Shown: piece after piece, positions 25,357 to 30,289 of the stretch
Position numbering within the stretch: the stretch's first letter is position 1
Layout: every line of letters starts with the position of its first letter
Assembly: GCA_054661495.1 (NCBI GenBank)
Contig: BAAFSQ010000021.1
Location: 42,409-74,408, forward strand
Direction of reading: 5' to 3'
DNA from: Zygophlyctis sp. KS116
Taxonomy: Eukaryota; Fungi; Chytridiomycota
DNA: 32,000 nt
Position numbers and translations under genes: made by a program
Notes under the pieces: model-generated
The model's database searches: none
The model's input: only the letters and a program-made list of their open reading frames with translations
Told to the model about the DNA's origin: nothing

Positions 25357-26938
25357 TTTTATTTATCAGAGGTATTGGTTGCAATCTCTTGAATAGTAAA
25401 CCAAACATTGATACAAAAAACATTGAAAGAATCGTGCAGGTTAGAGTTATAACATTATAAGGCATGCTGAAATCAGGTGTTGGAAGAGCTATTAAAATTG
25501 GATCTGTATAGATTCTTTTGGTTTGATTCTCACTCTTTAAGGATATTATAGCAGATCTAGTCTTAGTTGTAAATATATTACCCAATATCAAATCCTCTAT
25601 TAGCATCAGGAGGATGTTCAGTGATTCTCAAGTGCGTTTTTTCAAAATCAATCTTTAAAAGAGTATGAGATTTTGAAGGTAAAACAAGTGCCATTTCCAG
25701 TACGGTTGGATTCTTTCTATTGATAGATCCTTTATAATACATGTCCTTGACAATACCTAGTATTAGTTTTAAAATAAATACTCAAGTCATCGGTGACAAG
25801 GAACCCGTCTTGATGAATTTCCAAGGTATGAAGATACAGTTTTAGAATCCATGGAATAGTTTCCAAATATACAATTTCTAAAGACCGATCCATATTATTA
25901 TAAATATCAACGACTAATCCTCCTCTTTCTTGTCCGTACCCAGTTTGATACCGTGAAACATGTAAAGGAGGATTTGGAAGTGGTTCTATTCATAATCAAA
26001 TAATCAAATATACCAATTTTTGGATTTTTCCATTTGACTCCAAGATCTACATTTTGCATTGCATCAAGATCGTATTCAGCAACTATAAACTTATTCTTTT
26101 GAACTGAGAGAGGTTTAACCGCCCAATCCACATCAGCATTCAGAGGTAGTTTAATTCTAGCACTAGTTTTAGATATCAAACACGAAGATTGAAATGAAGA
26201 ATCTAATAGCCCTTTTAAACTCCAATCTCTAGCATACATATTAATCTCTCTAGTAGGATCAAAAACAACATCTAGAGACTGTTCAAAATATGCCTTTTTT
26301 GATGTACAATCTGAAGTTGTACAAATAACTCTCAAACGCATTTGCATAGAAACGTAATTAGCATCAAATATCTTGTAAGCATTCAACAATTTTCCTAGGC
26401 CAGCTTTAGTTTTACAAGGCAACAATTTTGCCCATGGAGTCAAGTTTTCAGTACATACAATTTCTCTTGGTAATTTTGCATATCTTAGACTCCCAGTCAC
26501 TTTAGACTCTGGACGAAAACTAGAAAATATTGAAGTAGCAGCAGAATTAGACATGTAATTTAATGATCCACAAAATAATCCAGCAAGAATATTTGTGAGT
26601 CCATTCCAATTTTCATCAGTGCCATTTCCCATCCAAGTCCATAATTCCACACCGGGTGGAGCCTGATGGAAGCCGTATCCCCATACATCATTATCCCATC
26701 TTCCCTGAGTCATTGACAATGAAAGCTCTTGAACATCAAAACTATTTAAAATTTCGCCAATTCCCTTTGGAAAAGTACCAAAATGCACAGACTCTGTAAA
26801 CTCTGTTTTCCATGTAAAATGTGACAAAACCTTTCCATCATTAAATTGCTGAAGCGTTAAATCTTCTGACCATTCCTTGGGCTGATTTAAGGCGACTACT
26901 AATGCCAATGCAGCGATAATCAATGACTTTTGAGACAT
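25346..26938 (-). CDS. GPI16: GPI transamidase subunit PIG-T/GPI16
   Basis: [71 protein letters not shown]. Three mini-introns. Confidence 0.95.
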
Positions 26939-26962
26939 AATCTCCTACAATTTCTCGCGTCA

Positions 26963-28485
26963 ATGCATCAGATCTCCAATTTCATTAATAATTCTCTTTT
27001 GGCTCCAGCAAAAGGAAACTATTTAGAGTCTATTAACCCCGCTAATGGTCAAGTAGAAGTTCTTGTGCCAGACTCTACAAGTGAAGATGTCGATGCCGCA
27101 GTTTTAGCTGCAACTAATGCGTTTGAAAGTTGGTCTCTGTCAAGCGTTGAGTATAGATCAAATATTTTATTCAAAATTGCAGATCTTATCCAAGAGAATC
27201 TGGAAAAGTTTGCAATTGCAGAATCAAAGGATAATGGGAAACCGCTCTCAGTATCTAGATCGGTTGATATTCCAAGAGCTATTCATAATTTTAGGTTTTT
27301 TGCAAGTGCTATTCTAAGTTCTAAAACATATGCTAGAGAAAATTCAAATGTTTTAAATTATACTGTAAAAACTCCAGTTGGTGTAGCTGCATTGATCTCT
27401 CCTTGGAATTTACCGCTTTACCTTTTAACTTGGAAAATAGCTCCTGCTATGGCGTATGGATGTACATGTGTATGTAAGCCTTCTGAATTTACTTCTTGGA
27501 CCGCGTCTTTATTGTGTTTGGTTTTAGTAGAATCTGGGGTTCCTCCAGGAGTTGTAAATATGGTTTTTGGGAATGGGAAAAATGCTGGTGCTCCGCTAGT
27601 TTCGCATCCAAATGTTCCTCTTGTTTCTTTTACGGGTGGAACTGCAACTGGTGAGTTGATTTATAAATCTTGTGCACAGCTGAATAAGAAAATGTCTTTA
27701 GAATTAGGTAATTTATAAAACTTATATAAAGGAGGGAAAAATGCTTGTATAATATTTCAGGATTTTGACTTTAATGAAGAGGCAATGGATGTAATTACAA
27801 GATCGTGTTTTGCTAATCAAGGTAAATCTTTAAACTTTTAAGATGTAATTAGGGCAGATTTGTCTTTGTGCATCTCGATTATATGTACATGAGTCAATTT
27901 TCCAAAAATTTCTTGATATTTTAAAGCAGAAAGCCCAGGGAATAAAGGTGGGGGATCCTTTTGATTCAAGTACAACAATGGGGCCTCTAATCTCTAGTCA
28001 ACACCTTGAAAAAGTTCTCTCGTATATTAAAATAGCCCAAACGGAAGGTGGGCAAATTATTACAGGCGGAAAGCGTTTAGAAGCAGATTTAAATCCAAAT
28101 GGGAATTATTTAGCGCCAACCATTATAATAGGAGTTGATCCAATCGATTGCAGAATACAACAGGAAGAAGTTTTTGGACCAGTTGTCACTGTTACGGCAT
28201 TTTCTAGTGAAGATGAAGTTGTTAAATGGGCAAATGGGACCAAGTATGGGTTAAGTGCCTCTATATGGACGCAAGATATAAAAAGGGCGCATAAAGTTGC
28301 AAGACAAATGCATGGTGGGACAATTTGGGTGGTAACTTAAATTAGTAACGTTTTAGAATTGTTGGATGGTGCGTGACTTAAATATGCCTTTTGGAGGAGT
28401 GAAAGCATCAGGATTGGGAAGAGAAGGAAATGAGTACAGTTGCGATTTCTTCTGCGACGAAAAAACAATTTGTATAAAATTATAA
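26963..28485 (+). CDS. ALDH8A1: 2-aminomuconate semialdehyde dehydrogenase (ALDH8A1 family)
   Basis: DIPRAIHNFRFFAS, ISPWNLPLYLLTWKIAPA, LELGGKN, FANQGQICLCASR, CWMVRDLNMPFGG. Introns 27708-27731, 27822-27852, 28332-28356. Confidence 0.92.
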
Positions 28486-28709
28486 ATCGAAGCACATCAT
28501 TTAGTTACTGCGGCCTGTTAATTGAATCAAAACAAGTCTACTCTACATTCTATGTAGTGGTGTTTGATCGGATTATATAGTAGAGAATTAACTGATCCGA
28601 TAAAATGAAAATAAATTCTTGAAGAACTTTTAAAAAATAAAGCATTTATTTTATATCGTATTCGAACGGAAATTCATCTCAACATTTACGTAAAATTCCA
28701 TGGGTTAGA

Positions 28710-29212
28710 TCAAGAGACTGCGGCAACCGATTTTATCTCAATCAATAAGCGAGGATTGGGAAGCTCTTTTACAGAAACTGTCCTTTGTTGTTAGTTAAAA
28801 TTGATTACGTTCTAGATGGTCCCGATTGAGCATTAAAGTATTCATTATACACTGCATTCATCTTGGCGTAATCTTTCATGTCCTATTGTCAACATAGTTC
28901 GACTCTACCACTAGAAAAACTGTAACATCAATTAAATCCAACAGACTTGATCCAGCAGCCTCAAGAATAACTTTAATACTTTGTATAAATTCTAATGAAA
29001 CATTACTTCTCAATAACTGCTCGTGTTTGTGCTGATATATCCAGATCAAATCCACCATCAGGCCTCTCAACTACACCCTCCCAGGTCCCATCTAATTTTC
29101 TAGAGGAGATGCCTGATACAAACACCAAATTGCCTACTTTCCTAGCATGAGGATAGTTTGCGAGTGCCTGTGCACGATTAGAAAGGATGATTGCATCGCC
29201 ATTTTTCGCCAT
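28710..29212 (-). CDS. Rid/YjgF-family protein, 2-aminomuconate deaminase (NbaF/AmnD-like), 140 aa
   Basis: Introns 28979-29006, 28883-28908, 28783-28808 give YPHARKVGNLVFVSGISSRKLDG...LDISAQTRAVIENIK...GPSRTTVSVKELPNPRLLIEIK. Confidence 0.85.
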
Positions 29213-29240: not shown

Positions 29241-30289
29241 AATATTAGCAAAAAGCACCGAATGATACCATTTTAGTTTAAATGAAATTCTCTGATAAAC
29301 TCATCCAAACTGAGGCAATAATTCTTAAATAAACCCAGTCCAGTTTCATATACAAGTTTTCTTATCAATAATTAAGTATGAAATTCGCGAAAAAACAAAA
29401 ATGTCGGAAAAGCTCTGGGTTGCACACCACTACTGCAAAGACATTTGGTCCTTCAAGAGTCTCAATTGATGGATGCGAATATGTCGATGACTTTCTCAAC
29501 ACTCTCTATCAAAGACGATTACTCTCCATCCCTTCAAAGACTCCCATCACTCTCTAAGATCTTTTGATGCATTTATTAGTGGGAAAGTGTACAAGTTGCG
29601 TTATGAAATTGACGATGGATATGATGAGTCTATTGGCTTGTCAGACGCGAAACTTGACAAGGTGGAAAAGCATTTTAATTTGTGTATCCCTCAAAGATTC
29701 TTACCTGTAGAGGAATATCCTCAGGTAGATATCCCAAATTCCCTCTTCGAACAGCTTGTTCTTTTACACAAACGCAATTCTCTGTTTTCGGAAAATGCTC
29801 GACGTACATTGATATCACTTTTCCTTGCCAACGCAATTGAATATGCCGATGTAGAGGAAAAGCTGCTTGTCGAAGAGGAAATGTCGTTTTCGTGTGTTTT
29901 AAAAGAAAATGGGAAGAGAATCAAGTACAATGGACCAGTTGACTTTGCAATCGGACATTCACCCGTCGATACAAGACTGAATCAGGACTGTGCTCTTCTG
30001 GTGGTACAATCGCCAAATTAGGAGAGGCTCTTGGACAAGCCTTGGCTCAAGCTGCGACCAACTTTATCATCGGAAAACAAGAGGGCCGAGGGGTAAATGG
30101 ACATCTCAAGGTATATTGGTGTACATCCGATGGAGAATCCTGGAGATTTGGGTTCATCACTGAGGGCAAGGGGGTAACACTTGACGTTTATTTTCCAACT
30201 GTTTCTTTTAAATCATGCATTCCGAATTTCATGGGATGCATTTAACAATTACGTCCTTTAATTTTTCTTGCCGCAAATATTAGCAAAAA
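29241..30289. repeat. 14-bp direct repeat flanking the Crinkler relic
   Basis: AATATTAGCAAAAA at 29241-29254 and 30276-30289. Confidence 0.8.
29401..30245 (+). pseudogene. Crinkler (CRN)-like effector pseudogene: header domain plus PD-(D/E)xK REase-like domain
   Basis: MSEKLWVAH / frameshift / TAKTFGPSRVSIDGCEYVDDFL...PITL* (TAA 29555). Then RRTLISLFL..VEEE..YNGPVDFAIG..LLVV / frameshift near 30008 / GQALAQAA..VYWCTSDGESWRFG. Confidence 0.7.

Follow-up and report, generated by a model that had tools for sequence, protein, structure and literature searches.

An intron-bearing gene of the 2-aminomuconate deaminase group adjoining ALDH8A1 in the chytrid-like fungus Zygophlyctis sp. KS116

For decades the eukaryotic kynurenine pathway had an open end after 2-aminomuconate. 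Two answers have now been published: fungi use a 2-aminomuconate deaminase (AMD), and animals use ASPDH. A putative fungal AMD was described in an ascomycete 3-hydroxyanthranilate cluster (Martins et al. 2021, PMC7842363), and the Aspergillus flavus enzyme, F9C07_710 / A0A7U2MQ13, has been reported to deaminate 2-aminomuconate in vitro and to be inactive on 2-iminopropanoate (Sassi et al., bioRxiv June 2026, 10.64898/2026.06.05.730449). According to the same preprint, whose text does not mention chytrids, human RIDA has no activity on 2-aminomuconate, and animals, which are without AMD, reduce this compound by means of ASPDH instead. The bacterial enzymes used for comparison here were AmnD/AmnE of Pseudomonas sp. 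AP-3 (PDB 6izh), NbaF and the Burkholderia AMD, from amn, nba and cnb operons; the operon contexts that were found agree with the statement in the initial annotation of our locus that dehydrogenase and deaminase are encoded together in bacterial amn/nba operons. That annotation also held the deaminase gene to be unassigned in animals and fungi, which the reports of 2021 and 2026 have made out of date, and proposed the KS116 gene as a candidate for the missing eukaryotic enzyme. Since animals use ASPDH and a fungal AMD had already been published, the gene cannot count as the enzyme that was missing in animals, nor is its assignment in fungi a novelty.

The window, a stretch of 32,000 nucleotides, contains two neighbouring intron-bearing genes, one of the ALDH8A1 type on the plus strand and one of the Rid family on the minus strand (Table 1). 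The positions first proposed for them, their convergence and the gap between them were all reproduced from the sequence, as were three mini-introns in each gene, and all six introns have the form GTA...AG. Full-length colinear alignments with homologues support the gene models. On its other side the ALDH gene stands head to head with a gene for Gpi16, 24 nt separating the two ATG codons; Gpi16 lies outside the pathway and is of use as a syntenic marker. Each exon was a separate query in the Pfam, NCBIfam, PDB and homology database searches, and joined exons were used for local BLAST, alignments and trees only.

Table 1. Positions of the ALDH8A1-type and Rid-family genes and of the adjoining Gpi16 exon within the window
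Feature	Position	Strand	Description
ALDH8A1-type 2-aminomuconate-6-semialdehyde dehydrogenase gene	26963..28485	+	480 aa, 4 exons, ATG 26963, TAA stop
ALDH exons	26963-27707, 27732-27821, 27853-28331, 28357-28485	+	
ALDH intron 1	27708..27731	+	24 nt, GTA...AAG; interrupts ELGGK glutamate motif; removal rebuilds LELGGKN
ALDH intron 2	27822..27852	+	31 nt, GTA...TAG; immediately upstream of catalytic-Cys motif GQICLC; removal rebuilds FANQGQICLC (from sequence)
ALDH intron 3	28332..28356	+	25 nt, GTA...TAG; removal rebuilds GTIWVNCWMVRDL
Intergenic spacer	28486..28709		224 nt between stop codons; genes convergent (tail to tail)
Rid-family AMD-group gene	28710..29212	-	140 aa, 4 exons, ATG 29212, TGA stop
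Rid/AMD exons	29212-29007, 28978-28909, 28882-28809, 28782-28710	-	
AMD intron 1	28979..29006	-	28 nt, phase 2; inside Asn codon following AVIE
AMD intron 2	28883..28908	-	26 nt, phase 0; splits VFLV / DMKD
AMD intron 3	28783..28808	-	26 nt, phase 2; within GPSR|TTV
Gpi16/PIG-T gene, first large exon	25907..26938	-	PF04113 Gpi16, 233 bits

All four ALDH exons match PF00171 at colinear profile positions, and the best PDB matches of the protein are the AMSDH chains 4i1w and 4oe2. Residues 1-480 align with chytrid ALDH8A1 proteins at 59-61% identity; identity falls to 41-44% with the ALDHs of bacterial amn/nba operons and to at most 37% with other ALDHs of the same genome. A search with the ALDH at the syntenic place on a related contig retrieves proteins called ALDH8A1 or 2-aminomuconic semialdehyde dehydrogenase. 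The motifs of the catalytic Asn, Glu and Cys are present as ISPWN, as (L)ELGGK across intron 1 and as GQIC across intron 2. The two arginine motifs that the initial annotation described as intact, DIPR and WMVR, do align with those of Pseudomonas fluorescens AMSDH: DIPRAIHNFR with DIPRAIANFR, in which residue Arg103 of the 483-residue AMSDH chain is Arg120, and NCWMVRDL with NTWYLRDL, in which Arg447 of that chain is Arg464. The top PDB matches of both segments are all AMSDH. The best NCBIfam models are those of HpaE and of hydroxymuconic-semialdehyde dehydrogenase relatives, both under their equivalog cut-offs. As judged from these alignments, the gene is an orthologue of ALDH8A1/AMSDH.

The Rid protein matches PF01042 in four colinear pieces, its successive exons covering profile positions 3-31, 52-74, 75-99 and 101-121; each match alone scores 13-20 bits, below the cut-off, and together they come to roughly 62 bits. 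Full-length homologues that carry PF01042 align over residues 2-137 at 54-64% identity. In the PDB, exon 1 is most similar to AmnE, a 2-aminomuconate deaminase (6izh, E 3.6e-7), as against E 0.05 for a yeast hypothetical protein of the Rid family (1jd1). Identity is 59-61% with bacterial proteins annotated by JGI as 2-aminomuconate deaminase and 40-46% with Rid genes of amn/nba operons (P. veronii, B. cenocepacia, Polaromonas), of which the Polaromonas gene adjoins genes for HAO and ACMSD. Alignment places in the KS116 protein the extended Lp2 loop, described for AmnE together with its signature features (PMC6742747), and the motifs YPH.R/K, VSG.SSR, GP.RTTV and LP.P..(I/V)E.K.

In a maximum-likelihood tree of 76 rows, in which YoaB is a rogue long branch, a branch with support 98/95 parts the AMD group, including the KS116 protein and the amn/nba deaminases, from RidA, RutC, YjgH and other operon Rids. 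The phylogeny thus recovers the AMD group as a unit apart from RidA/RutC/YjgH, and on these grounds the KS116 protein is, as originally proposed, a member of the 2-aminomuconate deaminase group and not an ordinary RidA. Within the group it falls outside the operon subclade, several well-supported inner branches lying between. The tree, built on 140 columns, does not resolve a single clade for fungal AMDs; a constraint uniting the KS116 protein with those of Podila and Synchytrium is not rejected (p-AU 0.36), and the clade is not thereby proven. A relative from Apiospora, whose gene sits in an ALDH-AMD-ACMSD cluster, is placed in the tree, and a homology search seeded with this protein (P0120) had Sordariomycete and other ascomycete relatives, and not A. 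flavus, among the matches listed. The subgroup of the KS116 protein also contains eukaryotic proteins fused to acireductone dioxygenase (ARD), and a fusion of Rid with FAA hydrolase is known within the AMD group.

The rest of the kynurenine pathway is encoded elsewhere in the genome, where two IDO genes and genes for KMO, kynureninase, HAAO, ACMSD and QPRT were all found; the initial annotation had named HAAO, ACMSD and downstream enzymes as those to look for. HAAO lies on contig C42 and ACMSD on C93, so that neither is linked to the ALDH8A1-AMD pair. FAA-hydrolase matches occur on contigs C3 and C4.

Conservation of the adjacency, for which a synteny survey had been suggested, is borne out: in five further genomes or contigs ALDH8A1 lies directly next to an AMD-type Rid gene. 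The two genes are convergent and 91 nt apart in Batrachochytrium, divergent in Entophlyctis, Amoeboaphelidium and one metagenome contig, and in the ascomycete Apiospora marii they occur in the order ALDH-AMD-ACMSD. In Synchytrium the two genes are about 7 kb apart; adjacency is absent in Rhizoclosmatium, Paraphysoderma and Thecamonas. Recurrence in five genomes or contigs, together with the looser linkage in Synchytrium, places the arrangement beyond chance. Gpi16 also adjoins ALDH in Synchytrium; in Batrachochytrium and Entophlyctis it is found within 5-8 kb. Chytrid synteny is therefore partly a matter of shared ancestry, and these genomes are not independent counts. The AA|GT site of AMD intron 1 recurs in Batrachochytrium, Entophlyctis, Podila and two metagenome contigs, so that its position is common to Chytridiomycota and Mortierellomycota; Thecamonas and Apiospora lack this site.

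The pair probably represents, in a chytrid, the final two steps of the fungal kynurenine (3-hydroxyanthranilate) branch to which enzymes have been assigned, carried by nuclear genes that lie side by side. By analogy with the A. flavus and bacterial enzymes that have been assayed, the ALDH8A1 orthologue would oxidize 2-aminomuconate-6-semialdehyde, the product of ACMSD, with NAD+ to 2-aminomuconate, the substrate carboxylate being gripped by the arginines of the DIPR and WMVR motifs. The 140-residue Rid-fold protein would then act as the 2-aminomuconate deaminase (EC 3.5.99.5), accelerating hydrolytic loss of ammonia from the unstable enamine, whose spontaneous decay has a half-life of about 160 min at pH 7.6, to give 2-oxohex-3-enedioate (4-oxalocrotonate / 2-hydroxymuconate). 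The two genes may be co-regulated. Counted against this reading were the separation of the subgroup from the operon deaminases, the ARD fusions, the replacement of Arg56 by glycine, the shared ancestry behind part of the chytrid synteny, the three genera that lack the adjacency and the lack of linkage to HAAO and ACMSD.

Some of these points would also fit a protein of AMD ancestry whose substrate is a different enamine or imine, or more than one such compound, and whose place beside ALDH8A1 is retained synteny. The inner branches that part the KS116 subgroup from the operon-encoded deaminases are supported, the ARD-Rid fusions of eukaryotes within that same subgroup hint at another or a broader role, and the presence of Gpi16 near the chytrid loci means that the adjacency is in part nothing more than conserved synteny. 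Yet the adjacency has persisted through changes of orientation and across Aphelida, Chytridiomycota and Ascomycota, the fusion with FAA hydrolase and the operon contexts tie the AMD group to tryptophan breakdown, and the assayed fungal AMD is specific for 2-aminomuconate. We regard this alternative as unlikely.

More improbable still is that the Rid protein is an ordinary RidA/Mmf1, a housekeeping imine deaminase guarding PLP enzymes, that simply stands beside the ALDH. The Rid fold and the conserved arginine and glutamate would suit it, both residues occurring also in RidA, but a canonical RidA is encoded separately in the same genome, on contig C84. With RidA proteins the KS116 protein shares 31-33% identity, and the signatures YPHAR, FVSGISSR, the long loop and GPSRTTV...LPNPRLLIEIK, common to the operon-encoded bacterial deaminases, are absent from RidA. 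No dedicated AMD model of NCBIfam was matched; its weak RidA and RutC matches concern one exon only, that to the RidA model TIGR00004 being of 20 bits. That the pair is a bacterial contaminant or came very recently from bacteria, as might be read from the bacterial MAG proteins among the closest full-length Rid relatives (59-64% identity) and from the operon-like pairing, is scarcely credible against six spliceosomal-type mini-introns in the style of the rest of the genome, eukaryotic neighbours such as Gpi16, an AMD intron 1 held in common with other fungi and an ALDH orthologous to those of chytrids and animals. The introns rule out contamination, much as the initial annotation had argued from them, and a 25-nt intron also interrupts the RidA gene of this genome, at the place homologous to AMD intron 2. 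The contamination and generic-RidA readings were accordingly rejected, on the introns, the eukaryotic neighbours, the separate RidA and the 98/95 split.

The probable assignment as the chytrid ALDH8A1-AMD pair makes the KS116 locus an independent example, from an early-diverging fungus, that backs the fungal answer to the fate of 2-aminomuconate. Three modest points are new: early-diverging fungi have an AMD with introns, one intron position is common to different fungal phyla, and ALDH8A1 and AMD form a core of two genes. The deaminase gene, single copy in KS116, appears as an old nuclear gene with introns, whose linkage to ALDH8A1 extends well past the ascomycetes. It is possible, though we hold it to be somewhat more doubtful than credible, that ALDH8A1-AMD, and not HAAO/ACMSD, is the ancient core of the fungal kynurenine cluster. 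On this view the last common ancestor of aphelids, chytrids and Dikarya would already have had an AMD gene with introns in linkage with ALDH8A1, repeated inversions would have left the linkage intact, and the ascomycetes would have acquired their four-gene cluster and lost the AMD introns later. More speculatively, the ARD fusions in protists may mark a second, hitherto undescribed role of AMD-type proteins beyond tryptophan breakdown. The locus opens no new question. It helps to date the formation of the cluster, and it helps annotation because many AMD-type proteins still go by the name "hypothetical" or "L-PSP endoribonuclease".

Among the systems described, the ascomycete cluster is close in kind. 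Its AMD belongs to the same Rid subgroup, with 43.6% identity between the KS116 protein and Apiospora marii P0120 and 48% between the KS116 protein and P0055, a clade-mate of P0120, and it too is genomically linked with ALDH8A1. In KS116, however, only these two genes are linked; with HAAO and ACMSD on other contigs, it lacks the head-to-head HAAO/ACMSD arrangement that ascomycetes are reported to conserve. The AMD of ascomycetes is described as intronless, whereas that of KS116 has three introns.

With the bacterial operon deaminases the KS116 protein shares the Rid fold, the extended Lp2 loop, Met96 and Pro126 of the AmnE hexamer residues, the cleft residues Ser35, Gly36, Arg117 and Lys135, and a gene position beside that of a semialdehyde dehydrogenase. 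It differs in its identity of only 40-46%, in belonging to another AMD subgroup, and in having Gly and Lys at the hexamer-interface positions of Arg56, which holds the AmnE hexamer together, and His123. Its gene is a monocistronic, convergent, intron-bearing nuclear gene, and near the pair there are no genes for 4-oxalocrotonate decarboxylase, hydratase or aldolase, unlike in the bacterial operons.

Canonical RidA/Mmf1/HRSP12 (UK114) has the same fold and superfamily (PF01042), and the equivalent of RidA Arg105 is conserved in the KS116 protein, which is set apart by a loop insertion of about 10 residues, by its motifs and by its place in a separate clade. In humans ALDH8A1 is followed by ASPDH, acting as a 2-aminomuconate reductase. 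The dehydrogenase step is orthologous, the KS116 protein having 52-53% identity to animal ALDH8A1 (coral and shark), but for the step that follows the KS116 genome has the deaminase solution.

The gene pair is real, was correctly read at the outset and is conserved. Both strands were read and the exons translated singly, giving the structures tabulated below. The two genes are convergent, and their stop codons (TAA for ALDH and TGA for Rid, the standard code being in use) lie 224 nt apart in AT-rich DNA, the GC content of the window being about 33%. All six introns start with GTA and finish with AG, the 3′ end being AAG in three, where TAG or CAG is usual. Each exon of the ALDH gene matches Pfam Aldedh, and each exon of the Rid gene Pfam Ribonuc_L-PSP, at consecutive profile positions. 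Database searches used one exon at a time, and script-joined exons served for local alignment and trees. Because the spliced products can be aligned along their entire length with full-length homologues, both gene models can be taken as sound; the coordinates, lengths, spacing and motifs of the initial annotation all held on exon-wise re-reading.

Features of the gene pair, its source genome and related loci
Feature	Location	Strand	Details
ALDH8A1-type gene	window 26963-28485	+	introns 24, 31, 25 nt; 480 aa
Rid-family (AMD) gene	window 29212-28710	-	introns 28, 26, 26 nt; 140 aa
Introns ending AAG	window 27708-27731, 28979-29006, 28783-28808		
AMD intron 2	window 28883-28908		VFLV/DMKD
Gpi16–ALDH8A1 gap	window 26939-26962		24 nt between start codons
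ORF upstream of AMD gene	window 29587-30021		144 aa
KMO (kynurenine 3-monooxygenase)	C21 about 32000-33600		best PDB match 5x68, E 1e-39
HAAO	C42		
ACMSD, true	C93		best solved relative human ACMSD, E 2.8e-52
IDO			two genes
Kynureninase			present
QPRT			present
Canonical RidA	C84 about 1480-1870 (L006)		25-nt phase-0 intron, VFLK/DMND
Further Rid-domain gene	C312:1710-2367 (L008, L009)		two weak Rid-domain matches in tandem
Second Amidohydro_2 gene	C95:13191-14240 (L004)		isoorotate decarboxylase
Synchytrium microbalum public model (GCA_006535985.1)	L021 13737-19702		1306 aa
ARD with AMD-type Rid	L027 5665-6856; L028 2847-4038		also proteins P0019, P0049, P0060, P0083, P0106

For the first exon of the ALDH gene and its short final one, the best solved relatives are chains of 2-aminomuconate-6-semialdehyde dehydrogenase (AMSDH), and AMSDH entries are the exclusive top PDB matches for the DIPR and WMVR segments. 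The DIPR segment aligns with DIPRAIANFR of the P. fluorescens enzyme, placing its arginine at Arg120, and the WMVR arginine aligns with Arg464; both are known to bind the substrate carboxylate. Identity of the spliced product to the ALDH8A1 proteins from Cladochytrium, Homolaphlyctis, Batrachochytrium and Entophlyctis is 59-61% over its whole length; the values are 52-53% for coral and shark ALDH8A1, 41-44% for the ALDHs encoded in bacterial amn/nba operons, and no higher than 37% for any other ALDH of its own genome. Judged by sequence, the dehydrogenase is an ALDH8A1 orthologue and the source genome chytrid-like.

Exon 1 of the Rid gene matches AmnE, the 2-aminomuconate deaminase (AMD) of Pseudomonas sp. 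AP-3 (PDB 6izh), with E 3.6e-7, and a yeast Rid-family hypothetical protein (1jd1) with E 0.05. A HMMER scan with this exon returned 192 relatives, many of them exon-sized fragments called on eukaryotic DNA. The window protein is 64% identical to a full-length relative from GCA_000142905.1, which we take to be Thecamonas, 61% to one from a Myxococcota MAG, and 54% to one from Synchytrium microbalum that UniRef names “2-aminomuconate deaminase,” as JGI names large numbers of the bacterial relatives. Plasmid-borne bacterial relatives lie within amn/nba-type operons; in Polaromonas JS666 the deaminase gene directly adjoins those for 3-hydroxyanthranilate dioxygenase and ACMSD, and the P. veronii and B. 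cenocepacia genes are part of 2-aminophenol clusters. A maximum-likelihood tree (76 rows) is divided by a branch supported at 98% (ultrafast bootstrap) and 95% (SH-aLRT): on one side lie the window protein and the deaminases of the operons, on the other RidA, RutC and YjgH of E. coli, the RidA of the genome itself and the remaining, “other” operon Rid genes. One caution is that, inside the AMD group, the window protein falls outside the subclade of the operon deaminases. The group traits YPH.R, VSG.SSR, GP.RTTV and LP.P..IEIK, all present in the window protein, match those described for AmnE (PMC6742747), and the AMD-group loop is about ten residues longer than that of RidA. Identity is 46% to the Polaromonas deaminase and 40-42% to those of Pseudomonas and Burkholderia, but 31-33% to RidA proteins. 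A second caution is that, unlike AmnE, whose hexamer is held together by Arg56, the window protein has glycine at this position.

Elsewhere in the assembly (12.7 Mb, 1175 contigs), IDO, KMO, kynureninase, HAAO and ACMSD were all found, so that, within the genes sought, the pathway that would feed the pair is complete; HAAO and ACMSD had been named initially among the genes to seek. KMO shares the contig of the pair, about 36 kb upstream of it and about 10 kb ahead of the window, a distance too great for a cluster. The window Rid gene is present in one copy, and a canonical RidA encoded on another contig already covers the housekeeping function. A second Amidohydro_2 gene is not another ACMSD; it encodes isoorotate (uracil-5-carboxylate) decarboxylase, of the fungal thymidine-salvage pathway.

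Adjacency of ALDH8A1 and AMD is conserved. A synteny survey found the genes convergent and 91 nt apart in Batrachochytrium dendrobatidis (with Gpi16 5 kb away), head to head in Entophlyctis luteolus (113 nt), the aphelid Amoeboaphelidium protococcarum (179 nt) and a metagenome contig, and in the order ALDH-AMD-ACMSD in the ascomycete Apiospora marii. In Synchytrium microbalum they are about 7 kb apart. The Rid genes beside ALDH8A1 in these genomes are of AMD type, not RidA. Adjacency is absent from the Rhizoclosmatium, Paraphysoderma and GCA_000142905.1 assemblies and was not seen on a short Podila contig. Among chytrids, part of the adjacency is shared ancestry; because the pair persists across orientation changes and very distant fungal lineages, its conservation argues for a functional link.

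The surroundings of the pair have features of their own. Gpi16 (PIG-T) and ALDH8A1 are divergent, and the gap between their start codons is so short that promoters or 5′ UTRs must overlap the neighbouring gene; the equivalent head-to-head pair in Synchytrium has a gap of about 380 nt. A public Synchytrium model that combines an ABC-transporter ATPase part with an ALDH8A1 part probably represents two genes that the annotation has merged. No Pfam match was returned for the ORF immediately upstream of the AMD gene.

Intron 1 of the AMD gene, at an AA/GT junction in the codon after AVIE, recurs at the identical site in Batrachochytrium, Entophlyctis and Podila, as well as in two metagenome contigs; an intron in Synchytrium is one base off, and the GCA_000142905.1 and Apiospora genes lack an intron there. 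Because this position is shared among these AMD genes, bacterial contamination or recent transfer is ruled out, which bears out the initial argument from host-style introns. The shared site shows that the gene was intron-bearing before these fungal phyla split. A tree holding window, Podila and Synchytrium proteins together is not rejected (p-AU 0.36), the tree being too short to decide between a single clade of fungal AMDs and several. The intron of the genome's RidA gene corresponds to AMD intron 2 in both position and phase, although the proteins are just 31% identical; either introns were inserted in parallel at similar sites, or the intron is very old.

Several relatives carry additional domains. 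In P0044, a 406-aa JGI metagenome protein, an AMD-type Rid is fused to an FAA-hydrolase domain to which JGI gives the name 2-keto-4-pentenoate hydratase, joining neighbouring steps of the bacterial pathway. Acireductone dioxygenase (ARD), of methionine salvage, is fused to or abuts an AMD-type Rid in several eukaryotes; one such protein, from a transcriptome of the amphipod Hirondellea gigas, is possibly contaminant-derived. We know of no reason for a link between these two activities. In P0007 (289 aa), exon 1 of an AMD-type Rid gene continues in frame from a nicotinamidase-like isochorismatase domain, which could be either a real fusion or read-through of two adjacent genes on eukaryotic DNA.

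The initial view that the deaminase gene has no assignment in fungi has been overtaken by publications. A 3-hydroxyanthranilate catabolic cluster that includes a putative AMD has been described across Ascomycota (Martins et al. 2021, PMC7842363), and Sassi et al. (bioRxiv 10.64898/2026.06.05.730449, June 2026) show that some fungal Rid proteins group with bacterial AMDs that have been validated. [quoted passage not shown] Family placement and this published fungal AMD uphold the functional reading of the pair as a predicted ALDH8A1 and 2-aminomuconate deaminase. The window gene does not encode the enzyme missing in animals, which use ASPDH as 2-aminomuconate reductase; the distributions of AMD and ASPDH in fungi and animals exclude each other (10.64898/2026.06.05.730449). 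The preprint text makes no mention of chytrids or other early-diverging fungi. The ascomycete clusters that it describes span 5-10 kb; a head-to-head HAAO/ACMSD arrangement is what they conserve, and AMD alone among their genes lacks introns. To this picture the present locus makes small additions: shared-intron evidence of age in fungi; a core of two genes, ALDH8A1 and AMD, to which HAAO and ACMSD are not linked, in contrast to the ascomycete cluster; and a chytrid AMD that, unlike its reportedly intronless ascomycete counterparts, has three introns.
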